DNA of 64,000 bases from Oopsacas minuta (taxonomy: Eukaryota; Animalia; Porifera): positions 682,001-746,000 of the forward strand of contig JAKMXF010000310.1 in NCBI GenBank assembly GCA_024704765.1, given 5' to 3'. Of the stretch, positions 2,561 to 64,000 are shown one piece after another. Under the pieces are notes generated by a model. That model saw nothing but the letters and a program-made list of their open reading frames with translations, was not told the DNA's origin and searched no databases. Every line of letters starts with the position of its first letter. Position 1 is the stretch's first letter. The translations under genes and the position numbers were made by a program.

Positions 2561-3994
2561 TTTGTAAATTTGAGGTAATAGGTTATTTAGTAGTATTGTA
2601 CATTGTGAATGTAAGTAATTTGAATGTCTCGAACAATTTAAAATGTATACTAATACATAAGGATCCTGAGAAATGGGATGATAAATCACATAAAAATTGA
2701 TTAACATTGAACGAAAACGCATTTAACGTTAAACGAGGACTGATATGCTCTCTTATACACGTTGTGTGAAAATAGGAATCAGCATCAATAATTGCTTAAT
2801 TGTTCGAAATATTTTAGTAACTTGTAATACATTATGTAGGAAAAGTAGGGAAACAATTTAGAATTTTTATCTGGGCTGGATAATGTAACGGCAAATCTTA
2901 GCTTCCTAAAAATACAATTAGAAATTTCCCAAATCCTGTTTTACTACACTACGTTGTTAACAGCAGGATAGTGGCTGTTATCAACTACATAACAGATACA
3001 CAACATGTACCACACAACAGTAAAATGCTTTGAAATACTATCCAGTAATGATCTATGGTTATAATCACATAATGAAATACCTGCTGTTTACAAACCCAAA
3101 TATTGTAAATATGTATAAACTTGTGGTGTGTTGTATCATAACTACAATTCTGTTTGCAGCATAATTATCAAAAAGTATTTCGGCTCTGCTCTCTGTTCGA
3201 ATTAGCGAAATACATACTTCCCAAACTTCCCAGGATCCCTGGATATCCAGGGAATATTGAAAATCCCGAGATTTGAGATAATATTTAGGGAAATAGTTAG
3301 AAAGGGTTGGGTAAGTTTGGAAATATATAGGAGCCGAATAACACGGATATTAGAGAATTGGTATTTTTGGTGCATAGTGGTTAATCATATTTAAACAACA
3401 TTCAATTTAGTATTCATACACATATTTCATATTGATGCAATAATGCTCAAGATTGGTTTTCAAGCCAGTGATAAATGGGTGTGTGGAATCGGTTTCTGAG
3501 ATGTTTAGTGCATGAAATACGTATTTCCACTTCCATCTCCACAATTCTACATGATATATCATATGGCTTTAAACCATAGACAATAATACATTTTATGTGT
3601 CTAACCTTAACCAATTACGAAATACCAGTGGAACCAAGTTTCAGGACTAGAGATTGCCAGATACTAGTCCTTCTAGTAAGGAGTCTATGGTATAAAAACG
3701 TTAACTAATCCCGTACCAGATGTAGTACTTCGTGTCCAGTCTAAGCCCTCCACTTCTATTTATATGGTTAAGGGGTGGGAGAGGACGTATGAACGATATG
3801 CAAAGTTACATATCATTCATACCATCTGAATCTCACCGTTGCAGTAAAATCATGTAGTCAATAATTTAAGATATCATGTTAAGTAACAGTCTCAGGAAAT
3901 AGAGAAATAACAGGGGAAGGCAAAATTTCTTAATATATAGTAGTTAAGCTCTTTGAATGAACAAAGTAAATAATAGAGATATTAGCTATGATAA

Positions 3995-5770: not shown

Positions 5771-6168
5771 GCTATATAATATAGAGCATGCCTAATTTTC
5801 TGAGACGTGACGGGATGTGATGTTGTACTAACTTCCCATCCAATCAGAGCAATTATCAATTGCTGATTGTCCCCAAAACATAGTTAAGTCTCACGGATTG
5901 TATGTAAATAAGCCTTATGAGACGTAAGTAAGCCTGCATTTTTCGGGACCGCCATATCACGGAAATTAGGAACGCTCAACAGCAATGGTAATTAAATGAA
6001 GGTAGAAATCATGAGACTTGAAACGAACGGAGTGAACCAATTATTATAATTAATCACATAAACTGTCAAATTAGGTCAGTGAAATCTTTTATAATTGAAA
6101 TTACTTGCAAACAGTTTAAATAGTGAAGTGATACAATAATTTAATAACTAGAAAACGTGAATAACAAT

Positions 6169-9100: not shown

Positions 9101-10215
9101 GATATAAACTCAAGTGCTACTGAGACAGACACATTCCTATGTTCGTGTCTCTTGGAGTGCGTCAATGAGGAAAACCAGCAGAAGAAAGCAGAGAAGTCCT
9201 CTCCTTGGAAATAAGATACCAACTCCTTTATTACTTTAGCTCCTCGCGTCTTGTACTGAGTGTGTACAGGACATTTCAGACATATATGTCTAGGTAGGAC
9301 GATAAAAGTAATCTTAGCTTCCCTATCCATCAGTCCTGTATCCAGTATGTAGTTTATGTAGCTAAGAGCTTGTACACATAGTTTCTGTTGAGGCTTAGAT
9401 ATGGTAGAACTGTTCTTGCTATCAACTCCTTTGAAAGTTAGCAGAGGGAATAGATGTTTGATTATTTCAGTCAGAATATCTTTCTCATTCCCGTGTAAAG
9501 GTTTATGTACCTCTTCTACACACAGCCAGGCTAGACGGTTAACTATACACGATTCATCATCTAGAGGGTAGCGAGTAATTACAGAGAACAGGGAGGAGAT
9601 GAGGTGAAACAGAGAGTCAGGATGTAACTGAAATCTGAAGTTCGTAAGCAGGACTTTTATCTCTACCAATATACTATGTAATATCCCTGGTCCTTCAATA
9701 CTACCTTCATAGTTCTCTTCAGCTAATTCAATATCCATATCAAGATCTTCTTCCTGTGTCATGACCTGTACATTGCTTCTCTTGCATACTTGTCTAACTG
9801 AAGAGCTTAATAGCTGTACACACTTGTGGAATACAGCTGGATGGAATAGTTTGTATATATTAGCTCCTTCTACAGAGAGTATACACACATAGCCTAGGCA
9901 GGCACTGAGGTTGAGATTAGTAGATCCGTTGGCAGACACAGAAAGAAACACAGCTGCTGTAATAGTGTCATGACGTACACCTGCCCGCATCAAAATATTC
10001 CACACACCTACTGTGTCCTCACGACAAGAAATACAGAACGATATGAATTCTTGCCAGGAATCAGGTTGATACACTTGGTGATCTGGTGGAAGGGAAAGTT
10101 CTAAATCTAGGAAATTAGTGTTCCAAAGCTCTGTGACAATCTCTTCTGGTATATCAAATACACTCAGTTTATCTTGAAGTAATGATATTGATGTGTCCAT
10201 ATTGAATGTATCCAT
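6169..10215 (-). CDS. NCAPD3: Condensin-2 complex subunit D3, 1348 aa, single exon
   Basis: HEAT-repeat protein with RLLDQKAGVRKSAL and the Cnd1 region LCDMCVRYPNLIENY...LIQEDYIKLKG...YHHFIESIF, plus KKDVIENIIP...LADKQLAEEIEFD typical of CAP-D3. Confidence 0.93.
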   Translation of the reverse strand: MDTFNMDTSISLLQDKLSVFDIPEEIVTELWNTNFLDLELSLPPDHQVYQPDSWQEFISFCISCREDTVGVWNILMRAGVRHDTITAAVFLSVSANGSTNLNLSACLGYVCILSVEGANIYKLFHPAVFHKCVQLLSSSVRQVCKRSNVQVMTQEEDLDMDIELAEENYEGSIEGPGILHSILVEIKVLLTNFRFQLHPDSLFHLISSLFSVITRYPLDDESCIVNRLAWLCVEEVHKPLHGNEKDILTEIIKHLFPLLTFKGVDSKNSSTISKPQQKLCVQALSYINYILDTGLMDREAKITFIVLPRHICLKCPVHTQYKTRGAKVIKELVSYFQGEDFSAFFCWFSSLTHSKRHEHRNVSVSVALEFISTTDIDCEVCIDTISANTTKLYTFLLDWIVRICSDSVSPVRTNALNAIYELSTNSNLPHVQDAIKSLITASGDSTSHLLDLLSNRLLDQKAGVRKSALSALEGVLRLLSSDAIIEWMRPIRKRAFDVSLSVRKQAIISLRELLLSFPNYPPVQDIFLSGLLPLVLDPEASVQERCVEVLMEEIFSQLRPYKTDETELLHSWSLLSHICGEHYSDYHLYFTIFLQRLNKAKKLTAQLISKLITYTTSPNHLDAWRLLALLSEQTESINVDTVYNAWRKAIDTPDRCHHQIFSMIKILSNLHSKLTDFQADKLQMWMSGELEKSTMSPDNIKIYVNALILLCHSKNPANRRPGWFSMWTADMIRNCSVFVKEWLHRAKDISPENLTSEDKFVTSLSLLGELITVSPDEIDPDIPPLIQWALIQKPSLNPDTSLRSIRPDLSPRVRAFICIMFGKLCLVKQDLAYDSPDLLAEELFTSNSVPLKSNIIIILCDMCVRYPNLIENYLSHISPCLKDGSYVVRRQTLTLLTKLIQEDYIKLKGTLIYHLLAVINDTEDELRDLVHYCLKHVLLKKYPRALYHHFIESIFYFQHNSNHPSCNQFTQTDTEIERFCLPGVSNTRKRFNIYNYMLEQLSDEQRFNLSGRIVQEILGSTVDKVLKLNIANSLLITDALSILCSDEIKLSYVKTHSPDNLEDDEREAMEDAVNLQSNMIKTLVKKDVIENIIPTIISMKRLLQKERSPIISNLMGYLHRLKDDYKDKFTEVLSADKQLAEEIEFDIKRYEEDQKQVRRSISMRASLSAAEVVLAHTNLSPVVLLSPHSVSVTKTLRDAKIRSRVENTPAVLQLNRLTNIQSENRRKVASPLSITHNYPVVAIGEGSPELNKTSQRRKKPVKTNRPRARVPKEKKVSFLTPPSLEQDVLMNNTFGSPPLRLNTSLSTSLSARSMSLLTRANVISFSPTDECSGITPPPWNLRLRQGPK

Positions 10216-10236
10216 TTTGATAAACTACGTAGAATA

Positions 10237-10425
10237 CAGTGGAAGCCGCTTAATCGGGATATCCGCTTAAACGGGACAATGGTTTGGGTACAGATTTTTT
10301 ACATAGAAAATCGTCGGATAATTGGGACATTGAATCGGTTAATCAGGATTTCTTATCCCGATTAACCGAATATGAATTATATTCGCTTAATTGGGATTTC
10401 TACCCCAATTAAGCGGCTTCCACTG
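10237..10425. mobile_element. pogo/Tigger-type MITE, 189 bp
   Basis: 18-bp perfect TIR CAGTGGAAGCCGCTTAAT, TA at 10235-36 and 10426-27, and internal subterminal GCTTAA..GGGA motifs. Confidence 0.9.
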
Positions 10426-11239
10426 TATAAATATCACTAAATAATACCAGTGTAGAATCTGGTTGGTGATTATACATATGTGGTATGGTTGTAATTCTAG
10501 GCAAGAGTCCAAAATTATATTTGGGACAAAGCAGTATATCAATTAATGTCATGGTGATGATGCTAGAGCCAAATCTCGCGGATGGTGATGCCAGGTTGGC
10601 TATATGAGACACGAAGAGACAGGGAGGAACAAAATTTCACGACCCGCACGTTCTGGGGAACTATCTGAACAATTGCTAATTCTAGATTCATGACCAGCAG
10701 CACTTTAGGCCTTAATATCTGGACAGGTCAGATGCCACATGTACAGTGAATATATTTTAGAGGATAGAATTCCAGACTCCAGTACACTCTCCACTAGAGA
10801 AGAATTGTTGTCACGGGTCTCTTAATGCGCTTAGAAATGTGGAAACATATTTTAGTGGATTAAATCCTCTCCTGCTAACTAATTGTTGTGTTCAGAGATA
10901 ATATTACAAAGTGCATAAGGGCGAGCATATCAAGGGGACAGCATTCACTGTGGTATCATGGGGACATGGAGGCATGTCTGTTAAAACGTTATGTGACACA
11001 ATATTTACGAATATATAATTGTCTAGCTTCTACTATGTATTGTAATACGAAAGGAAAATAATTAATAATGAGGCGTGAAGTAATTATAAAATTTCTGGAA
11101 CAATTCCCTTTCATATTTTATAAGTTTTAACGAAAACTCAGAGTCCAGTAAATGTATAAATGCACTAATCGCTATAATTGAGAAATAAATACCAAATAAA
11201 TAGAATAAATAGAAACAAGGGGATAGAGAAATTAGAGCC

Positions 11240-12555
11240 TCTGTAGACAGTTGTCTTCCTTCATGTCACCAACTGTAATTATAGCCAGATCGTTCTATGA
11301 ATATGCAAGAGGGACGGAATATTTGACACAGTCCATGCCTTGTCTCACAAACTGTTTCTATGAATTTACCTTCTATGCCGAAAACTTTGATGGAATTATC
11401 CCAGAAATCGCATATGTAGATTCTCCATTCATGTGTGATAGGATTCCATAACAGGTTGAAGTTGTATGCTCCTACTATCTGATCTTCTATGGGTATGGAC
11501 ACTATGAATTCTCATTCTAGAGAGAACACTTGGAGAGGAGAGGGAGATCCAGTGAAGAGACAGAAGACAAACTCATCAACAGCCTTCATGTCCTGTAGCC
11601 ATGGATGCCTGTTGGGTATCTTGGTATGCAGGATAGGATTAAGTGGGTATTCTTGTTCTATACAGAGAGGATCTAGCTGCATACGGATGAGACTGGGCGA
11701 GAGATTACCCACAAACAAATGATTACTATTAGAGGAGGTGCAATAAGCTTGCGGTATTGAGATGGTATGTTCACGATTCACGAGAGATATGTCTGTATGT
11801 GAACTATCTCTCCATTCAAGCTAAATTGTGCTAATATACTTGAATAGCATACAAATACGGACGGTTTGAAGTATGTTAATGAGACAGGAATATCAGCCAA
11901 ATTGAGATGAGGACAATAATTAGATACTTTAGCTGCAAGATCTTCATCTCTGTAGAGTGAGACAACATCACCATATCTATAAGCTACCATTACGTTTTCA
12001 TAAAACACAATTACTCCAGCTGGAGCATCTAATTGGTGACTATGAACTCCTCTATCAACACCAGATACTATAGGGATGTTCCTCTATTCTTTGTGTGGAG
12101 CTACTCTATGAGATTGTTATCAGTGTTGATGGCAAATGAAGGAATGTATATTCGGTTGACATAATAGTGACGGATCTTTCTGATATATAACTTTCAAACC
12201 CTTATACTCCTTATTGGCATATTCTTGCTGACAAGCTATTCTAGTGACTTGGCTACTCTGTATAGGAAAGATAGTTCATTGAATGTGAAAGCCACAGCGC
12301 TCAGCTATTGCATATTATCCTCCATCTCTTTGCATTTCTCTTTTACTCATTTTCATTTCTAGTTTTCAACTCATCACTAGCTACCGCACACTCCTTCTTG
12401 ATTCTATTCAGGCTGATGTCACATTCCTGACGTGTGAAACCCCAGGGAAGCAGGTCTCTCTTGGACGGATTCACAGGTTTCATGTCTTTGCCTATATCAG
12501 GATTTACATAGAAAAGGAGTTCTCCCTTTATTAAGTGTTTCGCTCCCTGCTTCAT
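11240..12555 (-). pseudogene. Degraded coiled-coil + NHL-like propeller gene
   Basis: Fragments 12343-12555, 11778-12008, 11512-11781 and 11266-11502. NHL blade IYICDFWDNSIKVFGIEGKF...IFRPSCIFI is present. A coiled-coil frame near 12200-12340 reads through several stops (KEKCKEMEDNMQ*LSAV...SLE*LV). Confidence 0.7.
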
Positions 12556-13619: not shown

Positions 13620-14159
13620 TCCTGTAGCTAATTAGATTATTAGAATGTTTTACTAATGCGAGACTAAGGATAAGAATTGTAGAATATACACATACATATA
13701 TTACTGACACCTTTATTACAAATCAATGATTGAGCTTTTTTATCCATCCATGGTGGATTTGTAGAGAGTCTGTATACGTATAGTGGGTATTGGGAAAACC
13801 GGACCAACTTCTACTACAGAACAGTATAGGTCAATGCTAGTCCTGTAAAAGTTATTAGCAAGAACGAGAAATCCATCATTGGTACATTTTCAATGTCCTC
13901 CGTTCATTAAATAGATGGGCAGAAGATTTCAATAAATCTCGAATTATCATAATGGACAGGTTAGAGAATATAGAAATAAGGGAATATGGGTCAAGCCCTT
14001 TAAATGTGGTTCTCGATAATAATTGAAGTAACTAATTTTCGGACAAAAGTGAGTATCCCTAAACCTACCTTATAGAATATACTAGTAATATATACGTCAT
14101 GATCCAGGCTATACAATATAACAATAAGTAATCGACAGTGATTAATGAATGAGTAAATA

Positions 14160-14912
14160 TTAATACAAGTGAGTCCGTTGTTTGGGATTTGCCCTTTCTT
14201 GTAATTCATTAATTTTCTGTTTTAAACAGACAACTTCTCTGCTATGCAGCTGTTGCATATGTTCTAATTTGCGTCTGTAGATATCTTGTGAGTTATTCAT
14301 TCCCGCATTTCCTGTTTGATTCTGATGAGAGCTTATCGAGTTCTGTCTCATTGCTTTCATTAGACGAGCCTCGTATTCTAGCTTCAGTTTTGTTATTTCT
14401 TCTTTCTTGTCTTTCTCAGCTACATTTAGTTGTCCCTCTAACTCACTTATTTTCTTGTCCCTGAGGGTAATCTCGTGATCGAATTTCTTGTTTAGATTTA
14501 CAACTGTAAATAACTGTTCCTCTTTTATTTCGTCAATTTCAGCTTCTTGCTTACATTCCAATTCTTTGAGATTAATCCTCCAACTCTCTCTCTCATTCTC
14601 AAACGATAATGTAACTCCCTCAGCCTTTAATTCTAACTCCTTAATTCTACTCTTCAAATTGGAATTCTCTTCTTGTTGTACAAGATGTTGTCCCAATGCA
14701 GATTGTACTGTGTCAACAGAGTCCTGTAGCAGTTGAATGTGTAGCATTTTATCCTGTAGCTGTTTCTTAGATTCAGTTTTAGACTCTGTAGCAAGAGTCA
14801 GCTGTTCTTGGAGCTGAATATTCTCAGATACCATTTCATTACATTTCAACTCAAAACTAGATAGCAATTGTAAACTGCTCTCAATGTCGATATTTTCCTC
14901 AGAAATATTCAT
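14160..14912 (-). CDS. CCDC152: Coiled-coil domain-containing protein 152-like, 250 aa
   Basis: All-heptad protein. The C-terminal EKDKKEEITKLKLEYEARL and DIYRRKLEHMQQ segments match recalled CCDC152 motifs EKEKQNEIIKLQLEFDAKL and SIYRRKLQHFQE, and the length is similar. Confidence 0.75.
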   Translation of the reverse strand: MNISEENIDIESSLQLLSSFELKCNEMVSENIQLQEQLTLATESKTESKKQLQDKMLHIQLLQDSVDTVQSALGQHLVQQEENSNLKSRIKELELKAEGVTLSFENERESWRINLKELECKQEAEIDEIKEEQLFTVVNLNKKFDHEITLRDKKISELEGQLNVAEKDKKEEITKLKLEYEARLMKAMRQNSISSHQNQTGNAGMNNSQDIYRRKLEHMQQLHSREVVCLKQKINELQERANPKQRTHLY

Positions 14913-16688
14913 CAGGATATGCTATGTGGTGAAACTCTATAGGAATTGTAAAGATTAACTCGTACGTACAAACAATTTGATTCATGATTAGTCTGTTTGT
15001 TTGTCCGATTTTAGTGTATATCTTGTCAGTTAGTATAATGGCCCAGTAATTAACTAACTTCCTATATCAGGATTTATTATTCTGTGCTCATATGACCGAA
15101 TTTTGTCTCACTTTGGCCACAGAGATATTACGAAATATTCTGATCAAATAGATTTTGACCCAATTTGACCAACGTGCCAAACATGACCAAACCTGAACCA
15201 ACAAATCAACAGTGTGGTCATGATAGTTATGTTAGACAAAGTGAGGCCACAAGGGCATGAGAGTTTGAAAAACCCTATCCTATATTATAACCTATAATAT
15301 TAAAACCCAATTAATCTTTATCAATAACTATGACTAAGGCAAAGGCATTCACTTAAATTATTGTACCATGGATTGGCTATTATATTTATATTCTTCCTCT
15401 ACATATTACAGTATAATACATTATGAATTTATATTACCCCATCCACCAAATGCCATTCATGAACAAGTGTGTTATACAGTAGTGTTAGATTGATAGTGAA
15501 ATCATATTTTAACATCAACATCAAAAGGATAAAGCAGCGGCGACACATTGTTACATAAAGTGGTCCGGCGACGCCACACCTCCGATATTATAACTGGTCA
15601 TGTGTAGGAAGAACATTGGGCAATATTTCTATAAGTAAATAGTGATATGATACCCAACTGTTCTTTTAATTTCACTCGAGTATTAAAAGTAATTCAAAAA
15701 CAGGAAATTTGCCAGATTGATCGGATAATGAGGTACGGCGCTCGTCGGATCTGCCGCCCCTGTAAATGACATCTGTTTTACCCTCTCCAAGTGAACAATA
15801 GATCTGGCACTCTTCTACCGTCGATAATGTCTTGAAAAGGCCTCTAGTATCATTGAAATAGGCCCCGGAAGTTGGAACCATTCGACCCCTAGTAGTATAC
15901 GATCCTATGTTGACACTAGCAGCTTCATGAGCCTCAATCCTTTACTTCTAGTTCTAGGTCTTGATTCCATTCTCGTAACTTGGCGTTAGAGTTCGAAGAA
16001 GCGAAGGTTCTATTGTTAACTTCCTTTCGGGAGACCTCCTGTCGATTCTACACTCTCTAAAGGGACTAGACTCTGCTAGATCAGATGCTTTAACTTTACT
16101 CCTTTATCCTTCTACAAACAAAGATCGAATCACCTTAAGGATTCCGATCCTGGGATTTTCAAACGAATTGATCACACTCCAAAAATTGGCTTCCATTGAA
16201 TTATACACGTCTACCTAATTAGGAAGCTGTAGAAATTATATGTAACAATAGCAATCTGATGTTCGTAGTACGACATAATATAATATTACCAATACATACA
16301 CATAAGTTGACATAAGTATACTACATATTACTATAGTACATTCTTAGCAGAACCGATATTGTTATTCTTTGGCTGCATGGCAGTGGACCACGTTAGATTT
16401 CGAGAATTTGAAGGTGTCCCAATTTGGACACATTGGTGTTAATTAGAAATAGCATCACTAATTAGTAATAGTATACGCTTTGGTTATCCAATCGTGATAC
16501 TTTATTGTATTCCATTGTTTCTATGCTACTTTCATTATTATTTTCATTCCTTTTCCATTTAATTCAGTATTGAAGAACGTGAATATATACTCAATCTTCG
16601 CCATACAACCTAAAGCAAGCCAATGACTTGTAACTATTACAAAGACTAATCCATCAATCATAGTATTAGTATAAGCTATGTACATATA

Positions 16689-16799
16689 TCTATATTATTA
16701 AATCACAATTGTTGTTTGTCTGTTTATTTGTCCGTTGAATGCCTCGAGGCGCAATGCGGCGAGTTCATCGCGAAGCGACGAGCCAAAGGCTCGTAGAAG
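16689..16799 (+). mobile_element. Minimal Helitron-like non-autonomous element (family A, 111 bp)
   Basis: A|TCTATATTATTAAATC...TTGTTTGTC 5' end, hairpin ACGAGCC-AAA-GGCTCGT near the 3' end, degenerate 3' terminus followed by T. Nearly identical to 60231-60331. Confidence 0.65.
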
Positions 16800-48597: not shown

Positions 48598-49020
48598 TCT
48601 ATATTATTAAATCTCAATTGTTGTTTGTCTGTTGTTTGTCCGTTGATATGCAGATATATTGTTGTTTTCATGAATTGGCTTCTCTTAACGGCTCCTCAGG
48701 GGTAACACAATATGCTGAACCCGAATTTCGCATTTTCAAGTTTCTCATATGTACATTTATTGTTGTTTTTATCATTATAAAGTAAACATATTAGCAAATC
48801 TCAAAGTTTACTTAGATCCTTGCTCTCAACGGCTTCAAAGGGGATTGATCTTACAAAATTTTCAATTACATATTTACCATATACGTATATTTGTGAATTA
48901 CATTATCTTAAATATATCTATATTATAATACCCAAAGGGGCAGTCAATTCGAAGAATAGTGGATAGCTCGAGGCACAATGTGCCGAGTTCATTACAAAGC
49001 TACGAGCCAAAGGCTTCAAG
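48598..49020 (+). mobile_element. Helitron-like family A, long form
   Basis: TCTATATTATTAAATCTCAATTG 5' end, internal module, and the ctcgaggcacaatg...acgagccaaaggct 3' hairpin region. Confidence 0.65.
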
Positions 49021-50914: not shown

Positions 50915-53900
50915 CTAAAGAGTAAGTTCTCCATCATAACTATCGGAAGGGATATTGGTCATACAGTACTGTGCCTGATTTGATATATTGGTGTCGTTAT
51001 CAGAATATAATCCAGTACTTAGGTCGCCTTCTGACGTCATATCAGAACTAATGTAGATAGGGACAGCTCCGTAGGGCGGTCTTTCAGAATCGTCTGTGGT
51101 TTCTGAATCCAGCACATCCGGCATTATATCAGCAGGGTCTATATAATTGAATAAAATGTTAATAAATATTTTCTAGATTAAATTATTTATACTCAAATAT
51201 ATTGACTTTTAATTAATTATTTACTGCCATATTTGATTTGCTGTCTCGAAGGTAATTACAATACTTACCGTATCTAGTGGTGGCCATCTGATCATCAGAC
51301 TCGTCAGTGCTGCTAACTCGGTTTGCATAACAATCAGAGTATCCGGCCTGAACAGTATTCATATTGTTATTGTTTTGATATGTGTGAGGGTTAGAAATGA
51401 CTCGTGTGTCATGGAAATAACCACTATTAGAAGGAATAGGTTAGATTAATAGAGAAATAATGCATGACGAATTGTACATTACATATTGTGCTTCAAATAG
51501 TTCCAGTAAAACTAAATTCAATTTGATCTACTGAATGAAACAAACCAATCCCAAGCCGATGAAACTATTAGAGTGGAACTTAGATAAGACATCAGAGAAT
51601 AAAATTAGTACCTATCATCCCATTTATCCGAATTGATATATTTATTAAACGACTTAGAATTCGAATTTTAGTTTGACTGAGTTTTACTGTACTTACTGTT
51701 TAGGATCAATAAGAGGTGCATTGCTGTCCTTTGATTCAATCCCTTGAGAAAGTTCTGAACTCGTACTAGTTGAGACAGCTTGTCTATGACCCTGTTGTTG
51801 ATAACGATATTGCGAAGTATCTAGCCAAGCTTCCGGATCTGAAAAAAGATAAAATATAATAATAAGTAAAAACGAACTGTGATTTTAGAATTTCAGAATA
51901 TTTGTATGCAAAATACAAGTCAGTGGAGTTTTAAGTTTTGAATAAATGTATACAATCTAATCACCAATCGTTACATCAATGATATGTAAAATGTAAACTA
52001 AAATTATTCAGGAAGAATAACATTTTCGTAATACGTACAAATATATTTTCATATTTCTATATTATTAAATATCAATTGTTGTTTGTTTGTTTGTTTGTCC
52101 GTTGTCAAGGAAAGGATTTGCGGTATGCAATTTTGAAATCGTCGCATAACTATGTATTTATCGTGTTTATCAAGAAAGTAAATAGAATTCAATAAAACTT
52201 CACTAAATATATCGCACATGCTAAATCCGATTTTCACACTTTTGGATAATCATATGTAAATTTATTGTTGTTTTTATTAATATAAAGTAAACAAATTATC
52301 CAAATCTCAAAATATACGTTGATACTTGTTCTCAACGACTACAAAGGGCGTTGATCTTACAAAATAATATGTATATTTAGAATAATTAAATTGTTCTAAA
52401 TATATAAATAATATAACATTTAAAGGGGCCGTCAATTTAGAGAATAATGGATAACTCGAGGCGCAATGCGCCGAGTTCATCGAGAAGCGACGTGCGTGTA
52501 TTTAATGTATCGATTATATTATAAAAGTTCTAAGCTAATCTGCTGTATATTAATTAGGTTTAATTAATATGTGAAATATAATCAATTAATTAGTTAGAAT
52601 CAAAAGATAAATCTTGCTAGATAAGCCCAGCTTTAACTATTAATATATATATATCACAACACAAATATTATCTAATGATTTAGTGTGCATCACCATTAAT
52701 TTTTCAGTAATAAGTGTATATTATGATTATCAGTACCATTTGTTGTTGGGGTTGAATAAGTTTTGATCAGTATTAGTGTAGGAGAGCAGGTTAACATAAT
52801 GTGCGTAGATATGTGGTATACCAGGTTTGAAATTTGCATAATACGATAAGGATACCATCTGCACTGCCAATACATGTGATGAGTGCATTAAGTAATTATA
52901 TGGCTAAACTGGCTCTTGTAACTGAAACTACATTGGGATTATTGTTATCAAAATGAACCTTTAGAAGTATTTTAAGTATTCGAACGGTCCAAAACTATTT
53001 TGAAAATATTTCTGAGATATCTAATACACATCAATGGGATGAACCATCAACCAGATATCAGAATTCTATTGCTAACATAATCCTTTGGAAGTATCCATTA
53101 TACCCAGCAGGTGCAGCAGCATCTTAATCTTATGTAAGATCTTAAATGCTCAAACAAGAAAACTCAAATACCTTAGTTATATTATTTTGATAAATTGCCT
53201 AACATCCAACCAGCTGTGATCTTTATAAGGCAGCAGGATAATTAGATTTTATCAGGATTAACATAGTTACACAGTAGAGATGATCAATGGTGCTATTATT
53301 TGTTGTCGTAAGGGAAGTTTGAATATACTTTAGATATAGTATGGAAGTCTCAACATCAGATTGTTCAATTTCCCGTTAGTTTATTAGACTACATGGATAT
53401 ACGTAGACAACTATTCTCATGACATTATAGTTAGTTACAAGTATTTATATATTAATTTATATAGAATAAACATACCGTTGTGACCGTTGTGTGCATCCCT
53501 ATTAGCGTTCTGCCATTGATTTCCTTGTTCCTCGTTAGAAATATCACTTGTGGTAAAAGCGCTCTCAGAGCTACTTCCCTTGAATGTCATTAGTTGCACG
53601 TTCCCGTTGAATGATACTTTCTTAGAATTATTCCCTTCTGAGAATTTCGTACTTGGCTTCAATATAGAGGATGGATTTATTGCGCTGGTACGTTTCTTTC
53701 TATGTTGAATTTGAGGTTGATACTTGATATTACCAACTCTACGTCTCACTGCGAATATTGTCAAACACACGATGGATACGATAACTATCAGGATAAGGAG
53801 GAGGAGGATAGATAGACCGACTCCAGCTATGACAGGAGCTAGAGATATCTCTCCGTCTGTTGGGTATGTACCATCAGGACGGTAATCTAACGTACATCTA

Positions 53901-56900
53901 GCTGCGGTCTCTTCTAAAGATAGCGATGGATCACTGACATATACAGTAATTTCATAAAATCCATCTGATATAGCAGATGGATTTTCTAGGACAATATGAC
54001 GCGTGATCTCATCAAAGATCAATGCCTTATCTAACTGAGAATTTCCATGGAAATCTAACCTAATATCTGCAATTATTTCAGAATCTTTATCACTGACTGG
54101 AACACCCCAAGTGTCATTCCCCATCCTTAGCGTGAATGTGTATGATGAATATTCAAAATATGGCCTGTTATCATTCACATCCAGAATATTGATGTTAAAG
54201 GCTTGTATCTCGGATTCAAGCGGCGGATCTCCATTGTCAGTTGCAACTAGTTTGAGACTGTAACTAGAGTTAGATTCTCTATCTAAGATGTCATTAGTCA
54301 CCAGCGACCATCCTTCATTAGAATACTCAACTATAAAGGGTACCATAGCTGGTTGAAGGGTAAAAGTTAACCGACTATTCTCACCAGAATCTACGTCTAC
54401 AACAGAGAAATGAAACACTATAAATCCGCTAGGAACATCTTCTGATATCATATAGTCCTGATCTATAGGTTCTACTTTGGGAGCATTATCATTAACATCT
54501 ATAACTTCTAGTGAAATATTAGCAATCGAATACTTGGTACCGTCAACGTTAGATGCCTAAATAGGGAATAGTAAATAACTATTAATATGTGATTATAACT
54601 ACAAAATGGTACAAGGAGGATCACATGTAACCAAAACAAATATACAGTAGAACTCGGATAAGACGGACCCCTTCTGGGAAACAAAATTGGTACATACTAT
54701 CCGAAATTCCGAATAGATATTGTATCTAAGTGAATAATGCATCTGATTAATGAGGGATTAATGTTACGATATAGGTTCACACTAGAGGAAAATTTGCATC
54801 TCTACTAGATGTAGTAATTATGGTATTGGTAAGTATTGGCAATAATTTATCTGAAATATTCCCTATCTAATTAGTAGAAAATTTAGCTGCTATATTCGGT
54901 TGTGAAAATTACAGTAAATAATGCGAACTTACATTAAGTTGGAAGAAATATTTCGTTTCATTAGAAGATAGCGACTCGAAGTCAAACTCTTTCAATAGTA
55001 CAAGAGAGTTGGTTACATAACTGAATGCGAAATATTCGTTAACAACTTCAATGCTAGGAATAGCCGTATCAGTATGAATACAGTATGTTATCTGTCCATC
55101 TTCACCAGCATCTTTATCAGTTGCAATAGCTTCAGTGCAGAAGCTTTTTCCTTCAGTGAGATCTTCCCTAACAGTGCAACTGTAAGTAGAATTTGAGAAT
55201 ACAGGCCAATACTCGTTCAAGGGAGTAATTGTTAGATTGAACTAAATGTAAGGTAATAGTAAGATATGAGAATATGATACTAGAAGAAAAGGTCTAATTA
55301 ATACAAGTACAGTATAACCCTGTTAGTAAGTACTCTTAGTTGATACATACATTTCTCCAAAACGGATTTCTAATCTTGTACTAATTGTATGGAAGAATAT
55401 TCGGATAAGACCTTCGGGTATTACGTAATAATATTTGTTTCCCGATACGTCCTATACGAGTCTTACTGTATGAATAATATTTGTAGAAACTACTCACCGC
55501 ATATGAGCCATTTCTAGGACTATTACCATTATCCTTGTAATAAAAGGTTATAGCAACTCCAGTAGCTAATTCATAATCTAGTGGCTGTTCTAATTTGAAG
55601 TTATATACACCAGGCGCTAATTCTTCTAGTTCAAAGTTTTGAGCGCAATTTGTGATATTTTCACAAGTAAAAGTCAGATTAACTATTCCATTAGCAGAAC
55701 TATCCAGGTCCATTGTTAATATACGGGCAATAGTCAATCCAATAGATTCTTCTTCGACTGATTCTGCTTCTATTGTTATTTGTATTTCAGGAGAATTGTC
55801 ATTGATGTCTATTATCTCTACCTTTAAATCCACACAATCAAATCTACAAGGTATATAATGATTATCTGAACTATTTAGAGTCATAACCAGCTCCAATTAG
55901 TTCTCCTCTGATAGGATCTTATATAGAATAATTAATATATTAATCTATAATATTGTATTCAGATTGTTGCTTTTTGTTCTATTTTGAATGTTGAATGTGT
56001 CGAGTGCTAAATCAAACTTAGCAGCTCTTTTATCGAATATGCGCAGAGTACAAATAAAAACATAACGTCCTTTCTACCTCAAAGCACGTAAATATTTAGA
56101 ATTTTCTAATATTCCAAAAACTGTGCTCTAGTAGAACTGAGCTCTCTCTATATTTTTTCTCATATTATATTACAACTCATTCGTAATATCAATGCTTAGA
56201 TTGTATCATACGATTTTCTGTTAATGAAGTGCAGATCATAGGAAAAATATTGATTTTGTTCGTGGAGGTAAGATTCAAAACTACAGTTTAATATATCCTT
56301 AAGTTCATTTGTTAACAGCTATGTATATTCCGTCATGATTGCACAATACAATATTGTAAAAGAGTATTTTGTTAACTAACTCATTTATTGATGAAAGAAT
56401 ATGGTATATCATGTTTCAACCCTTCCTTTGTATACCTGATAAGTTCGTTGTAATATTAATTCACTAATCTTTTGCTTATCGCAGAAATATTGGAATAAAC
56501 AAAATTAATTAAAATTATGCAAATTCATTGAACTATTTTGAGCGAAAATCAGTTAAATTGACTCATAACTAATATTGCAAATATTACGTATTTGATATTT
56601 TACAGTTAAGCATTTGAGATAAACTGACAAGATATCGAAATAGACAACCACCACAATAATCACAGATATAGAGTAAGTTACTATCTGCGAATTAATTATT
56701 TTCTTTTTGAAAAGTTAAGAAAGAAACATAACGACAAGCATGAGTAATATATTAACTAACCTGTTAGTATCTGTTGGGTCAATAGCTACTACTTGTATAT
56801 TGAGAGTTAGTATGTTAAGTATGTCAGCATCGATTGATTCCTTCAATGTAATATCTCCAGTATCAGGGTTGATAAGCAGTAGAGTGCTAATTGAATTGGT

Positions 56901-58207
56901 GGTGTAGACACAACTTGTGCTCAAATAGTAGTTTATCTGATTGTTGGGGTATACATCCATATCTTCAGCATACACATAGCCAAACTAATAATGATAATAA
57001 TTCTATAATTGTTATGCTTAATACGATTTTCACACTTTAGATTAATCATATCTAAATTAAATACTCGTTTATACGTATAATAAACTCAACAAAATATTAT
57101 AGTCCTAAATACGGTCCCAGGGCCTTCAATTTGAATGACATATTTGAACTCAAGAAGCAAAGAAATGAGCCAATGGCTTGTAAAATTCATATGGAAATTA
57201 TTATGATCTCTTTTGAATAGGAAATAACCCAATCAAAGAACCTATATTAAGGTACTATTATTGTATTTACCTTTGTTCCGGATAGTGCATCCTCTCGTAT
57301 TTTTATAATAATAGATAAGTTCTTTATTTCTGGTGAATTGTCGTTACTATCCATTATTTCCACTTTGAGCTGTGCGGTTGCAGTCAGAGTAGAATTTACC
57401 ACATCATTAGCTACCAGTGTAAGATTATAAGTATTTATTATCTCTCTGTCAAGCCGCTCAGCGTTCTGTATAAGATAAATTCCAAAGAGATTACTCTCCG
57501 TTATTAGATTAAAAACAGTTTGTTCTGTCAGGTTTGAGTCGAATAATTGGATCTCATATTCAGAATTGAGGCCTATATAATATTGAATAGAATCACGAAT
57601 ATAAAATCAGTAGCAAATTTTGCTGTTGTTTATTCACAGTAACATTTGTGTATATTATCTTAGTGAATATATTTTAATAAGGATGAAAGTTACCTGCATC
57701 ATTATCACTGACTATCGGTGTCTCTGCTATCTTCACTCTATACACATCTGATATATCAGTCTCAAACATAGAGATTGTGTATGTATCCTGTGAAAACACT
57801 GGTCCATTGTCGTTAACATCCCTGACGTGTAGTATGAAATCAAAGATGTCACAAATGCTTGATTCGCTATTACTCACTCCTGAAAAGAAACATCTCAGAT
57901 TATAGGTCTCCCTTTCTTCTCTATCCAGCTCCCCTGCTGCAGTAAGAACTATATTATTCGAAATCTGCAGGGGGAATAATGACGAACCTTCTGTGTTATG
58001 ACAGTCAAGCACTAAAGTAGAATCCATATCACAGGTTCCCAAATGTTTTTCTATGCAATCTGAAAAGTTATAGATTTCTGTATTTACTGGGACAGTTTCA
58101 TTCAAAGTTATTTCATCGAGGCATGACGAACAGTATGAATGTTTAAAATGTATATTTACAAATAGTATGCTTAATATAAACAATAAATTAAAATTTAATT
58201 GCATCAT
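50915..58207 (-). CDS. Protocadherin-like type I membrane protein, 9 exons, about 1098 aa
   Basis: Exons 57694-58207, 57271-57572, 56761-56984, 55498-55843, 54933-55241, 53476-54556, 51697-51838, 51269-51423 and 50915-51138, all GT-AG and phase-compatible. Signal peptide, six EC repeats (DxNDNxP, LDRE/LDYE) plus a degenerate seventh, one TM, and a low-complexity tail. Confidence 0.9.
51504..51689. mobile_element. Tigger-type MITE in protocadherin intron 7
   Basis: CAGTAAAACT inverted termini. TA at 51690-91 is present on one side only. Confidence 0.6.
52056..52495 (+). mobile_element. Helitron-like family A, long form with truncated 3' end
   Basis: TCTATATTATTAAATATCAATTG(TTTG)nTCCGTTG 5' end and ctcgaggcgcaatgcgccgagttcatcg 3' region. 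Colinear with 48598-49020. Confidence 0.65.
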
Positions 58208-59374
58208 AGTGAATACGCTATTAGGATTTGATTTATTTTATTGTAAAGATTCCATATTTATATTTGGGGCGGTGTTTTGATGATCACCATGGACCTTAGT
58301 TGTTTGTAATTGATATAGCAAAGTTGAATATTGAAATGTGAGCTAATATGTGATGCATAACAAAATGGAGAAATAGTTGTTAGTGTAACTGGCATCTTAA
58401 TTTGGTAAGATAATGCTAAACTTTGATATTCAGTGTACTATAGTGAGATTTGATATTATAGATAGACTCAATATACGATGTGGTAGGAATATGAAGAAAT
58501 ATTATCTATGCAATAGACTAATTAGTATTAATTAATATAATATTACCAAATATACAATAGTGACTTGAATTAGGGAATATATTGATTTTTAGGTTCTCAA
58601 TAAAGTAATGGAAATTTTTACTGCTTTTCGCAAGATTTATTATATTGAAATATTATTTATTTGTACTCAAAATATTATATAAAATATTTAGAGATTATTG
58701 CGAAGAATAATTACAAATCTTTATAATCATGATTTAATTACGCTCTAGATATTATTTTCTTTCTATTTTGCATTATTTGGACTGGTATGAAATAAATGGG
58801 ACTCCAGCCCAATTGTCTATTTATTACGATTTAACCGGATAACTTTAGCGGGCAGGGTATAAGGAATCTCCATGAATATACATTTTATTCCGATTAAATA
58901 GCATTTTCCTAAAGTTTCAACACTGCCCAATATTTCAGGAAAAATATCCTTTGGGCTTATACAATAGACAAAGACGTCTCCCGTAAATTCGAACTGTCAC
59001 TGCAGAGTGGTAGGAACGGGGGCGCACCCCATTTTTTTCAGAAATATTTGCTGTGTGTATCAATGAGGTGTTGTGCATTTGTGTACTACATATTTGCACT
59101 TGTTTGCATTGTATAGCCAGCCCTAGCCGTTCGATGTTTCGATTATTCACGGAAATATTCAGTCTCGTTTCGCCGTACGTGATGTATTGCCTCGATTATT
59201 CGCTGTTTTTGTCACGGGTTATGTCAGTTTGGTAGAAAATTTTATATTTTGTTGAATTACTATGGCGAAAATGTATTTTTTCTCGATAAACAGCCCACTT
59301 ACATTGGACATTTTATCTAATTCAACATATTTAGTGTTTTATGGTATTTAATCATGTGAAAACCATATATTAAA

Positions 59375-59456
59375 AAGTACTGTGCGCATGTCCGTTAAGT
59401 ACTGTGCGCATGTCCGTTAAGTACTGTGCGCATGTCCATTAAGTGCTGTGCGCATG
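59375..59456. repeat. 22-bp tandem array x3.7 (AAGTACTGTGCGCATGTCCGTT), putative subterminal or regulatory repeats
   Basis: Units start at 59375, 59397, 59419 and 59441. Each contains TGTGCGCATG. The array ends ~275 bp upstream of ATG 59732. Confidence 0.92.
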
Positions 59457-59547
59457 CATGTAAAAATATTTATTCAATTTGTTGTATGCATATATATTGT
59501 GAATGTAGGTCAGAAAAAGTAATATCACGAATTGTACGTATTCCGAT

Positions 59548-59650
59548 ATCAATAGAGTCTCGTTAATACGAACAGGGTTAAGGCGTAACTCCGGATAAGG
59601 AGTACGTATTTTGGCAGTCCCCTGTGTACGTATTAACGAGAGTCTACTAT
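59548..59650. mobile_element. Short internally deleted Tigger-like MITE or hairpin
   Basis: tctcgttaatacgaacaggg versus the reverse complement tctcgttaatacgtacacaggg. The right end reads (rc) tatagtagactctcgttaatacg. Confidence 0.55.
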
Positions 59651-59731
59651 AGTATTAGTACTCTGGTATAAGTCTCTGACTGTCTCATACAATAAGAAAT
59701 AATCAGTTTCATCCTTCTCACCCATTTAAAC

Positions 59732-62361
59732 ATGGCCGAAAATATCTCTACCTCAACTTTTGAAATTAAACACCCACATCCAAGGAAACGAAGAATAGTT
59801 GAGGAGAAATTTGACATTACTGCAACAACCCTCAACATTGGAGGAATTGAAATTTCGAAGACAAATGTTTCGCCAGTAGATATCACAATATCAGAAGAGC
59901 AGTTTGAAGTTGTACCAAGTAAGTTACGTATTGAAAAGGCCCATTTCCATGGAATGTTATACTATTTAACACGACACTACCTAATATACTTTTTTAGGTC
60001 ATCCCAAGAAAGAAGTATACACTGAAATCTTTTCACAAGAAGAGCTAACTATTCCAATACTAGATCAATATGTACATCTGCTTGCTGATAAACAGAAGGC
60101 TTGGCGTTTGCAAGATTGCTCTGTAGTATTCATGTCAGATTTTGAAGTAATCAATGGTATGACACCTATATGTAACTACAGTGACCCTCGCTAATCCGAA
60201 CCTCGAATCAGAACAGAGCCTAATGTTATACAAGTATACGAGCCTTTGGCTCGTCGCTTCGCGATGAAATCGCCGCATTGCGCCTCGGGGTATTCAACGG
60301 ACAAACAACAATTGAGATTAAATAATATAGATTTAATTCAACTGCGAACAAATCCATAATACTATATTACACATCTTGGCAGCATTCCCGATAAATCCGT
60401 AGCTTTTTTCCTTAAGCCACCAAAGAATTTAGCCTAGTTAGGCGAGGTGGTGGCTAAGTTAGCTACCATGTATTCAATTTTATCAAACGCTGCTTGGCAG
60501 CCTTGTAATCATTTGCACACAACATTCGAAAAATGTACTCCCAGATCCTATAGTGTTTCAATTCGTGTTTTCATTTTCTAGGTGAAGTAATATTAACCAA
60601 GAAAAAAGTTTTGATCGAAACTTGTCTGATGAAATGCTTGTCTTGTCATACGAATTCTTGCACACATTATCAAGCATATGAATTGTGTTTGGAATTCCGA
60701 ACCTTAAACAATTCCGAATCCAAATCCCATGCTGGCAGTACTTACTACACATTAGGTGCAAATACAATTTTTTTGCTGAAGAATGGCTATCATTGCCTAT
60801 ATAGGAAAGAAATGAAGTGGTATTGCGACAATTGTAGTAGTATGTGTCAAGAAAAGTTAATTCTACAGGCAATCATGGCAGAATACAATGATCAGTTACC
60901 CGTTCCTCAGAAACCTCTTGATTATTCTACCATATCTAAACAATATCTTCCTTTTAAACTTAGTAAGAACCAGGCCATTATATATAATGGACAGTTAAGA
61001 CGAGGATTATTTCTACCCCCAAATCTTGAACCAGATATTTTGCATTGTGAGCAAGGACATAAATATGTTGCCAAAAGTCTAGTCGTAGCAAAAAAGGGAA
61101 TCATTATATACACAGAAAATGATGTCCTCGATTTAAAAGAACATACAGGTATGTTATTTAATTATATACTACATAGTATATATTTTTATTTGTCGTTTAA
61201 TATTCAAGCTAGCTTATTTACCCAATTTTTAGTGTATACATCCACTTGTGAAGGAAGTTGTAAATGCACCTCTGTGTTTGAAGGAAATAAATATTTACTG
61301 CTGAATGTCAACAATCGCTATTTCATCCACTATGGAGTATTATTTGAATACAGCGAGTTTATGACGATGTCTCGGAATACACTACATGGATACATGAGGT
61401 ATGTATTTTAGATACTTTTTGTCCGTTGGTTATGTACTCAATCGAATACCAAAATAACAAAAGAAATACATATCGATTGAAAGTGATCTATTACGGTCGG
61501 TAGTCATAATTATATAACCAATTAAATCAAATTCATTTTAGAAAGTTGATCTGGTTACTCTTTATTGTATTTAGAGCAAAGAATAATAAATTTGAGAGAA
61601 TGGGAAGGGAACTCACCTTCAGTTATCATATACTACAGCATGGATGGAATGGGTACTTACGTATGTTAGACATTAACTATAAGACAAGCTATATTTGCCC
61701 ATTATGCCAAGAAGCTCCAGAATTCTTAATTATGGATGGTATAACAGTGGGGACAATTAAGGAACTCCCGAATACAGTTGAAGAATACCTGGAAGATCAG
61801 AGGTTATCGTTTGTCCCATTATCAAACAGGGTATTGGTATCTGATCTAAAAACCAGAAAATTGATCAAAAGTTACTATTCATTTGGATTGGGTGAAAGCG
61901 AGTTTCACACCATGATCAATTCTTTAGAGTTTGAAGAAATTACAGAGTACATTATTTACGCTAACAATGTAATTGATGAGGTCAATGTGATTAATCCGAC
62001 TTATCCAAATGCCAAAGCTATTATGGAACTATTCTCCAGATCAGAACCTATTTCTGGCATTTTTCCTGTTTCTATCCTTAGCGAGTGCGAGAATAAAGCT
62101 ATTGCTAGTCTCTCTTGTGGTAACCAAATTGATACATGTCTGCTTTATGAGATTTTTGAAAAAATGCATACTCTAAGGCTATTCCTTAGCTCGTTTGGTG
62201 AAGTTAAAGAACAATGTACTACTGGTACAGGATTCACCCTTCATCCTATTCTTGCTGGTGTTCTAAGGGCTATTCTATCCAAGATTGAATTACTCAATAA
62301 CTATAGAGAAGGACGGAAGGCAGTAGAGGCTTCCCCATCAAATGACACTCTAGATAATTAA
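59732..62361 (+). CDS. KDZ/Zisupton (HMGXB3-related) transposase-like gene, 5 exons, about 621 aa, apparently lacking the C-terminal catalytic half
   Basis: Exons 59732-59918, 59998-60156, 60582-61148, 61233-61398 and 61575-62361 splice in frame. Cys clusters (CLSC..CTH, CDNCSSMC, CEQGH, CEGSCKC) and YICPLCQEAPEFLIMDGITVG, the CxxC..xxDG first catalytic Asp of this family. Confidence 0.75.
60231..60331 (-). mobile_element. Minimal Helitron-like family A element (101 bp) in transposase intron 2
   Basis: On the minus strand: A|TCTATATTATTTAATCTC...ACGAGCCAAAGGCTCGT ATA CTTG|T. Confidence 0.7.
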
Positions 62362-62371
62362 CAAGTATACT

Positions 62372-64000
62372 TTATAGTATCTTTACTAAACTCTTTTTGC
62401 TGTTACAACTTTTACAAATGAACGAGGAAACCTTTTGTGTAATATCCTGTAGGCCAACACATGGTTTGTGAAACCATTGGGTACACACTTGACAATTCAC
62501 CATATTCTTGAAAGCGAACTCGGGTAGACGACAAATACACCAAAGTTCAATTGTATATTCCAACTTCTTATTAACCTTTATCCGTGAACAGAGTCTTTCA
62601 GAAATTGTAGGCAGGGGTGATAATTTTTCAGAAATAATGAAATTACGCAGGTGACGTCTCATATTGCCCTGGTTCCATCTCAATATACTTGGTTCTAAAC
62701 CATTCGCCAACGCGATACTAACTACAATAGCAAAGACACCACAATCTGAAATCCCTCTTTGTTGTTGTAGCTCTTGAACTGTAACTTTTAAATCTTCAGT
62801 CTCGCTTCGATAAAGCAGTGCAAGTTGGATGTCCAGCTCTTCACTTAGACCCCGGATTAATAACGAATCATATACTGATATATTTCCTTCATCGTCAATC
62901 CTAGACACTTTCCAGTGTAGTTTACCATCGTGGTGTATTTGAAAACTATTTAGTGCTGCTCTAACAAATTGGCGATTCTAACAAGATAAAAGACATGCAA
63001 TTTGAAATGCCAATTATTTTCAGGATGATAAAATAAGCAAAATAATAGATTTACCTTAGATAAAATAGTATCCTGGAATCCTTCAATGTCTGGATAATTA
63101 TTCTTTATCAAAACCTAAACATAATGCATTAAGTAACCTGGTAAAAGTTGTTTAGTTGTTTGTCGAAGCGAAGTGCGAACGTAGGTTATAAATGGTATTG
63201 AAATATAATATAATTAAATCATAGAGAGAGCTTACCCCAAAGGCGTTGATAGTCACATCACTAAGAAAGGTTTTGTCATTCGATAGCTCTTTAAGACAGT
63301 CATCCCTTACTTTTTCGTCTAAAATTCTCACAAATGTTACATTTAATGGAATTAAAGCCTTTGCTGCTGATAATCCTGCCATTGAAACTACAGATGTATC
63401 CAAAAGAGACTGAGGGGAAGTAAAGGGTGAGTGATCGGGTTGCTGTTCTGATATGGTATTTGGTGTTGAATGGATCGATTCACCAAGATATAGTGGAGAC
63501 GATGGGCATTTCTCTGGAGAAGTATTTAGAGATATTTCCACATTGGAATTCGGAGAGGAAGGTGAATGATAAGTTGGATTATATATATTCCGTCATCCAA
63601 GTCTGAATCTAAACAATCTTCTTTTGATAAATGTATAGGTGACCTGTCTCTAAAACTATCAGATAGATCTGGAGAAAAGTATTCGCGCATCGATTTGATA
63701 ACAGATAGCAAAGTAGTTCTGCCCATATTCTTTGATTGCTTGAGAAATGGAATTTCCTTGGGCCAAAATATTGGCCGGAGTTCACTTTTCCCCCAAAAAT
63801 TACGCGGTTTTCCTACAATTAAAATATGATATACGTATTACCAAATTATTACTTACTTAAGTATTACATACCAATTTGTTTCAATAGCAGTACATACCCT
63901 GTACCCACGAAATAACAACAAAGGGTGGCTTCCAAAACTAAGGGTAAGAAAAACAAGAAACTTACTGTTCATCTTTTGAGTTCCCCATGATAAAATCTTT
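62372..64000 (-). CDS. NRF1/EWG-like motif + Ulp1/C48-like cysteine protease + PHD finger gene, 5' end outside the window, one frameshift at an (AT)n run near 63585
   Basis: Exons ~63236-63812, 63055-63114 and 62372-62977. Spliced product: GKPRNFWGKSELRPIFWPKEIPF ... FLSDVTINAFG|VLIKNNYPDIEGFQDTILSK|..QIHHDGKLHW..YDSL..QQQRGISDCGVFAI ... WCICRLPE..CQVCTQWFHKPCVG..FICKSC. Confidence 0.82.

Follow-up and report, generated by a model that had tools for sequence, protein, structure and literature searches.

The last 4.6 kb of a 64,000-nucleotide stretch of the genome of the glass sponge Oopsacas minuta (assembly GCA_024704765.1, contig JAKMXF010000310.1, positions 682,001 to 746,000; the whole stretch is referred to here as the window) almost certainly belong to a copy of a Kyakuja-Dileera-Zisupton (KDZ), or Zisupton-like, DNA transposon. 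The element spans positions 59364 to ~64534 on the window scale, or 5,171 bp, with ~534 bp lying beyond the window end, and holds two genes, one for a KDZ transposase and one for an accessory protein predicted to combine an NRF1-like N-terminal region with a Ulp1-type protease and a PHD finger. As a working model overall, the stretch is probably the left 4.6 kb of an internally deleted, non-autonomous copy of a two-gene KDZ element that moves by cut and paste. The copy is a derivative of a KDZ family member and not an autonomous member, and it is very probably dead, with both the transposase gene and the accessory gene broken. Its main parts within the window are listed below, where X3 denotes one public run whose spliced contigs have 98% likeness to the window.

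59356-59363 (no strand): left copy of the 8-bp target-site duplication (TSD), GTGAAAAC, predicted from the terminus layout of the paralog L002 and then matched on the same contig
59364-59380 (plus strand): left terminus, CATAT followed by the conserved ATTAAAAAGTAC; homology to the paralogs L002 and L003 begins at 59364
59375-59456 (plus strand): left subterminal array, 3.7 units of 22 bp with 96% matches, from Tandem Repeats Finder (TRF)
59732-62361 (plus strand): truncated KDZ transposase gene, five exons, 621 aa, from a gene model with which the NCBI model agrees in both ends and in length
62356-62360 (no strand): junction of a 1.23-kb internal deletion by which the last two transposase exons are gone, from comparison with L002 and loose ends of X3 contigs
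62372-62977 (minus strand): last accessory exon, with the PHD finger and the C-terminal portion of the Ulp1-like protease, in which His, Asp, Gln and Cys are present, from Pfam and alignment
63055-63114 (minus strand): 20-codon mini-exon of the protease domain, from the X3 joints 62977/63055 and 63114/63236 and tblastn
63236-63812 (minus strand): large exon holding the NRF1-like motif, a linker of low complexity and the first part of the protease domain; the frame changes at 63590/63591
63690-63812 (minus strand): NRF1-like motif KPRNFWGK..RPIFWPKEIPF, Pfam Nrf1_DNA-bind E 0.0023, below the cut-off
63966-64000 (minus strand): end of the first accessory exon, from the X3 joint 63812/63966, the protein P0163 and the continuation of the contig, L007

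The boundaries of the element carry much of this identification. An earlier reading of the window, made without database searches (the sequence-only reading), had placed both genes in a single mobile unit and had pointed past base 64000 for a mirror 22-bp array, inverted termini and an 8-bp TSD; all of these are present on the same contig, and with matching termini and paralogs of ~97% identity in the same genome the claim of a mobile unit is borne out. The continuation, L007, whose coordinates convert to the window scale by subtraction from 74300, was found through the 90% cluster of a paralog product, which led to LOD99_7758 (P0163), the window's minus-strand gene according to NCBI. The TSD was forecast beforehand from the layout of L002, namely an 8-bp flank, 5 bp, ATTAAAAAGTAC and arrays. 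The right copy lies at L007 9758-9765 and reads GTTTTCAC, the reverse complement of GTGAAAAC with an 8/8 match, directly outside the right terminus GAGGT-ATTAAAAAGTAC, and the chance of an 8-bp match at a fixed position is ~1.5e-5. The inverted mirror array, of four units, occupies L007 9771-9860, ~440-529 bp past the window end, and X3 contigs of sister copies part from the window exactly at 59364, where they have loose ends. Zisupton and Dileera elements make 8-bp TSDs (PMC12730594, PMC11343200), and the TSD test for a KDZ/Zisupton type found such an 8-bp duplication flanking the inverted termini of the window copy.

The same architecture recurs in other copies of the family. The window, L002 (the paralog of ~97% identity), L003 (heavily deleted and on another contig) and the locus of P0164 are four places on three contigs of GCA_024704765.1, and eight loci other than the window, L002 among them, were compared from five assemblies, this one and four ENA assemblies, with protein identity ranging from ~30% to 97%. 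A tblastn comparison of both products with the fetched loci placed the accessory and transposase genes tail to tail in L001, L002, L004, L005, L006, L009, and L010, with a remnant in L008, and the co-occurrence of the two convergent genes, which the sequence-only reading had named as a check, is therefore seen in eight loci. Gene linkage is kept, termini and TSD enclose both genes, and arrays are found in other copies, the opposite in each respect of what would have spoken against that reading. Duplications of 8 bp flank L002 (GTAGTTTG), L004 (GAACGAGA), and L006 (CTTTTCCA), and one of 7 bp flanks L008; only a partial TSD was found for L005, and none for L001 and L009. An ATT[A/T]AAAAG core stands at both ends in L001, L002, L004, L005, and L006, with variants in L008 and L009.

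The outermost 5 bp are unequal in the window copy, being CATAT at one end (window 59364-59368) and GAGGT, in reverse-complement view, at the other (L007 9766-9770). The CAT-type end adjoins the accessory gene in L004, L005, L006, and L008, it adjoins the transposase gene in the window and L002, and CATAT stands at both ends in L009. From these swapped CAT-type ends it looks as if the interior has been flipped between the inverted arrays.

The plus-strand gene had been described as a spliced transposase gene with cysteine clusters and a DG motif, and the five-exon model, the NCBI model and the X3 joints agree with that description. Its exons lie at 59732-59918, 59998-60156, 60582-61148, 61233-61398, and 61575-62361, and all introns are of the GT..AG type. 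Splice joints at 59918/59998 and 60156/60582 are present in X3 contigs, where a loose end at 61148 also continues into exon 4, so that introns 1-3 are supported; the splice models are backed by spliced molecules of the window copy or of a near-identical one. The protein contains Cys clusters and a C-P-x-C ... M-D-G motif that alignment shows to be conserved in KDZ transposases. An exact look-up of the exon-5 ORF met no called gene. A search of exon 5 against 1.8 billion representative proteins gave 130 relatives, one of which led to L002, and this exon matches P0064 (E 9e-8) and P0112 (E 3.5e-4), which are proteins with the Pfam KDZ and CxC4 domains. For Pfam KDZ (PF18758, cut-off 26.6 bits), P0064 and P0112 score 35 bits, against 26.7 and 26.4 bits for the paralogs P0015 and P0164. 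For Pfam CxC4 (PF18717, cut-off 26.9 bits), P0112 lies above the cut-off with 29 bits, P0064 and P0021 lie below it with 24.9 and 21.6 bits, and exon 4 of the window alone gives E 0.072, the introns dividing the domain.

What remains of the transposase in the window stops short of the catalytic region. By alignment, the protein ends before the IYDNAC, VDRFH, and NSQ..EQ blocks, which make up most of the Pfam KDZ domain; no single exon of the window copy has a Pfam match to this domain, and the transposase C-tail has no tblastn match within the window. Comparison with L002 locates the loss: window 62065-62360 matches L002 9902-10197, window 62356-64000 matches L002 11427-13068, and the 1,230 bp of L002 without a counterpart in the window (10197-11427) hold its last two transposase exons, the product of which scores 26.7 bits on Pfam KDZ. 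X3 loose ends at 62357 run into that coding stretch of intact copies, and the stop codon of the plus-strand gene is fortuitous. The sequence-only reading had noticed convergent stop codons 10 bp apart, and as an observation this is exact, with stops at 62359-62361 on the plus strand and 62372-62374 on the minus strand, but it does not stand as a feature of the element; the spacing is a scar of the deletion at 62356-62360, because the stop codons are ~63 bp apart in the better preserved L001. Other internally deleted versions appear among the X3 contigs, with joints at 60347/62531 (corresponding to the L003 copy) and 59648/60235.

The convergent spliced gene proposed on the minus strand was likewise recovered, as four exons linked by the three X3 joints given in the list, with its ATG at L007 10001, ~299 bp beyond the window. 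Its frame is broken by a 1-nt deletion between 63590 and 63591, where an A is missing relative to L002 and L003, and L001 has a continuous open reading frame (ORF) across the site. Because of this frameshift, NCBI splits the accessory gene into products of 206 aa and 270 aa; no long X3 contig spans 63570-63651, and the frameshift is either a real mutation or an assembly error.

The earlier description of the second gene as encoding three domains is supported, with a PHD finger, a Ulp1-fold protease and a DNA-binding region that is NRF1-like at a sub-threshold score. The PHD finger (PF00628) in the last exon scores 29 bits against a cut-off of 24 (E 1e-6), and its Cys4-His-Cys3 pattern is kept in the alignment. 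In the protease, alignment of 16 sequences shows conservation of the clan CE blocks HW, YDS, QQQRG, and DCG, none of which is damaged in the window, and Pfam PF02902 gives 13-18.5 bits, under its cut-off of 20.7. A Foldseek search with the model of P0131 (predicted template modeling score, pTM, 0.60) returned yeast Ulp1 as the top match with probability 1.00 and E 5e-3, followed by further matches to XopD, SENP1/2/5/7, and NEDP1. Judged from this predicted structure, the accessory protein has a Ulp1-fold protease with its catalytic residues intact.

The N-terminus of the accessory protein is held with good confidence to be an NRF1-type DNA-binding region, and it is not filed as a member of PF10491. 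On the spliced 206-aa P0163, the best and only specific Pfam match is Nrf1_DNA-bind (PF10491), at E 0.0017 and 18.5 bits (cut-off 23.5), with residues 40-135 aligning to profile positions 72-171. A five-lineage profile of the second exon (alignment A2) has as its only matches in the PDB the NRF1 structures 8k3d and 8k4l (E 0.0019 and 0.0059). The NRF1 alignment covers a short motif only, WGK..KP.WWP..IP, which, going by the residue numbers of the structural paper, is part of the loop that the DNA-binding domain of NRF1 inserts into the major groove (PMC10810270). In a protein atlas, Nrf1_DNA-bind is the nearest among the Pfam-bearing clusters (score 0.83, 13 clusters); a search of the atlas with the N-terminal exon alone was uninformative. 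The nearest atlas cluster of any kind to residues 1-165 of P0163, with 209 shared features and a score of 0.93, is a family of hypothetical 210-aa proteins mainly from molluscs, and the structural neighbors of a model of this mollusc-type cluster are NRF1 for the C-terminal half and SRF-type MADS proteins for the N-terminal half. The accessory protein may have relatives outside sponges.

For the dimerization domain of NRF1, profiles of 5, 19, and 15 sequences, the third without the columns of the DNA-binding domain, gave no NRF1 match. The dimerization domain of NRF1 resembles the MADS fold (PMC10810270), and the best matches of the model of the N-terminal exon are non-significant ones to the MADS boxes of SEPALLATA3, MEF2, SRF (Z 3.1), and MCM1 (Z 3.0). 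The residues of NRF1 that contact bases are R206, N242, and R244 (PMC10810270). An arginine that aligns by eye with R206 is invariant in five lineages (alignment A1, which has no NRF1 row); the N242 position holds N in L005, L006, and L008.

The ends of the element carry motifs of the kind that NRF1 recognizes. The 22-bp array upstream of the transposase gene had been singled out from the sequence as containing TGCGCA, and both TRF and a shuffle test confirm it: the octamer TGCGCATG occurs four times in the 64-kb window, every time in the array, against 0.65 occurrences expected, and 0 of 100 shuffles reach four. Three units of the left array carry GCGCATGTCC and the last carries GCGCATGCATG. 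A motif survey of nine loci found a CATG-centered palindrome repeated beside both termini in every lineage, as GCGCATGTCC in the window and L002, GGACATGTCC in L004, and GTGCATGCAC in L008. The exact NRF1 site, GCGCATGCGC, is the motif in L005, L006, and L009, where it is found nowhere in the locus except at the element ends, and it occurs once in L001. NRF1 recognizes GCGCATGCGC in dimeric form, the isolated DNA-binding domain binds the TGCGC half-site, and human NRF1 binds weakly when the GCGC half-sites carry symmetric changes (PMC10810270).

Such uniform, lineage-specific variants at both ends speak for a reader that has changed along with the element and against the conserved NRF1 of the host, and they do not discriminate between the accessory protein and the transposase as that reader. 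Co-variation between the residue at the N242 position (N or K) and the end motif looked promising in five lineages and failed across nine loci, the breakers being L009, which has K with GCGCATGCGC, and L008, which has N with GTGCATGCAC.

In the mechanism proposed for intact copies, the transposase would cut and paste the element, producing the 8-bp duplications, and the accessory protein would sit on the CATG-centered end palindromes through its NRF1-type dimerization and DNA-binding region. This binding would mark or pair the ends, in the manner of En/Spm TnpA, and the Ulp1-type protease and the PHD finger would thereby be brought to the element ends. The window copy, with its ends kept and no working gene, would move only in trans with the proteins of intact relatives. 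That the accessory protein is the reader of the arrays is somewhat favored, on the strength of its sub-threshold NRF1 likeness and the NRF1-type sites at the ends. The anti-silencing role, like that of VANC, that the sequence-only reading proposed for it is doubtful. Equally tentative is the broader idea that NRF1-type domains may serve as end-recognition modules, with an accessory dimer on the CpG-containing palindromes of both ends that would sense whether these are unmethylated and recruit a SUMO-type protease and a histone reader, so that the element stays open or its ends are paired.

Several points weigh against the accessory protein as reader and against parts of the model around it. 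The NRF1 likeness lies under the Pfam threshold and has a sequence basis of ~21 residues; two of the three base-contacting residues are lost in the window copy, with K at the N242 position and S at the R244 position. The 19-sequence profile of the N-terminal half finds no NRF1, and the model of this part is poor (predicted local distance difference test, pLDDT, 52.6). The array motif of the window, GCGCATGTCC, has only one canonical half-site, and the correspondence between recognition-loop residue and end motif is not upheld over nine loci. The Cys-cluster domain of the transposase could equally bind the arrays. As for the gene structures, the spliced X3 contigs, at their level of likeness, may derive from sister copies.

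The alternative that fares best, though it is unlikely, holds that the arrays are promoter elements for host NRF1 and that the accessory protein competes with or tunes this activation as a form of autoregulation, and has no part in transposition. NRF1 is a promoter-binding activator (PMC10810270), and the left array lies 276 bp upstream of the transposase ATG and the right array ~140 bp upstream of the accessory ATG; the only rise in X3 depth, a weak measure, comes downstream of the left array, and L005, L006, and L009 carry the exact NRF1 consensus. Promoter arrays for a host factor would be expected to keep that consensus, yet uniform non-consensus variants occur at both ends (GCGCATGTCC, GGACATGTCC, GTGCATGCAC), and the arrays form inverted ends right beside the cleavage termini, like sites for a transposase or a cofactor.

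A little less likely still is that the Cys-cluster region of the transposase binds the arrays and that the accessory protein has another task, such as chromatin targeting or the removal of SUMO-dependent silencing, without recognizing the element's DNA, which amounts to the chromatin module of the sequence-only reading minus its docking. Many DNA transposases bind subterminal repeats themselves. KDZ transposases hold CxC zinc-chelating domains beside the catalytic core, and Ulp1 and PHD are chromatin-type modules, all of which fits this division of labor; it leaves unexplained, however, why the likeness of the accessory protein is to NRF1 only while NRF1-type palindromes are limited to the ends in three loci. 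The reading of the two genes as ordinary or domesticated host genes lying side by side, with the array a chance microsatellite, has NCBI's annotation of hypothetical host proteins in its favor and can hardly be credited in view of the exact TSD, the inverted termini, the gene pair kept in diverged copies, the inactivation of both genes here, and the other transposons nested in sister copies.

The preferred reading, in which the accessory protein would recognize the element ends, has precedents in other transposons. In En/Spm elements, a transposase acts with a second protein that binds motifs in both subterminal regions, aids the pairing of the ends and reactivates silenced copies. The working model proposed for the sponge element is the same two-protein scheme as TnpA and TnpD of this maize CACTA transposon, but there is no relationship between the proteins, TnpA lacks both the protease and the PHD finger, and En/Spm has one transcription unit in place of the two convergent genes found here. 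In plants, VANC, an anti-silencing protein from the Mutator-like VANDAL elements, binds tandem motifs of its own element, and Ulp1-like proteases are recurrent transposon passengers, as in the KAONASHI Mutator-like elements. These systems share with the sponge element the presence of accessory genes inside a DNA transposon, and they differ in host kingdom and transposase superfamily; no homology to VANC was seen in the accessory protein.

NRF1 and its relatives EWG and P3A2 (structures 8K4L and 8K3D) match the order of parts predicted for the accessory protein, with a helix, two strands and helices at the N-terminus followed by WGK..KP.WWP..IP, and the element-end motif, whether GCGCATGCGC or a CATG-centered variant, fits the type of the NRF1 site. 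In the sponge protein, in contrast, the fusion partners of this region are a protease and a PHD finger instead of an activation domain, and its gene belongs to a mobile element.

The KDZ group takes its name from Kyakuja, Dileera, and Zisupton (Bohne et al. 2012; Iyer et al. 2014, cited in PMC5718144 and PMC12730594) and includes KDZ1 and KDZx1 of Cryptococcus (PMC11343200). Passenger genes are common in KDZ/Zisupton elements (PMC12730594, PMC11343200), and fungal ones carry TET/JBP genes or ORFs of unknown function. The sponge element resembles Zisupton/KDZ elements in the order of CxC4 and then KDZ domain, as seen in relatives of its transposase, the 8-bp TSD, and the inverted ends, whereas it differs in its glass-sponge lineage with spliced genes, in an NRF1-like/Ulp1/PHD passenger fixed tail to tail with the transposase gene, and in short terminal inverted repeats with arrays of a transcription-factor-type palindrome. 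A literature search found no paper linking an NRF1-type domain or the three-part protein to a transposon, and nothing on Zisupton with Ulp1 or on Nrf1_DNA-bind with a transposase. KDZ/Zisupton elements, their 8-bp TSDs and their passenger genes are already known, and the combination of NRF1-like region, Ulp1-type protease and PHD finger in one passenger, as predicted from sequence comparison, appears to be new.

Two further features lie within the element.

59553-59646 (no strand): foldback, located between left array and plus-strand gene, whose 22-nt arms are 91% complementary
60237-60335 (no strand): unrelated interspersed repeat within transposase intron 2; further copies lie at window 16685-16795, 48598-48634, and 52056-52492 and in L003

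The left part of the foldback resembles a sequence present three times in L001 (482-549, 2689-2756, and 4897-4964), and read depth peaks at the intron-2 repeat. At the position of the foldback, L002 has a 3.1-kb foreign insertion (2921-6034) with a 710-aa ORF that weakly matches RAG1_RNase_H and is Transib-like. A Tc1/mariner element (HTH_Tnp_Tc3_2 and DDE_3) lies inside its transposase exon 5 (8573-9902). More distant members of the two-gene family flank the L002 copy directly (1009-2449 and 13635-16155), which suggests clustered or nested insertion. The element is situated between a large cadherin gene on the minus strand (window ~53526-58027), which starts ~1.3 kb to its left, and a caspase (Peptidase_C14)-SH2 gene; this gene and a Rad17 gene lie to the right of the element past the window end (L007 1-1795).

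Knowledge of KDZ/Zisupton elements comes mainly from fungi and fish, and the roles of their passengers are mostly obscure. Where a passenger has a likeness to a DNA-binding domain and the element ends carry a matching motif, as appears to be the case here, the role of a helper protein becomes a direct question of binding. For annotation, the 621-aa, 206-aa, and 270-aa models entered as "hypothetical protein" are fragments of a dead transposon and not host genes. If the proposed mechanism is true, truncated copies that keep the Cys-cluster part of the transposase without the catalytic part could act as inhibitors. The finding also raises the question of how NRF1, which is widespread in animals, relates to mobile elements; if NRF1-type domains do serve as end-recognition modules, animal NRF1 and the transposon protein would share an origin, by capture or by domestication.

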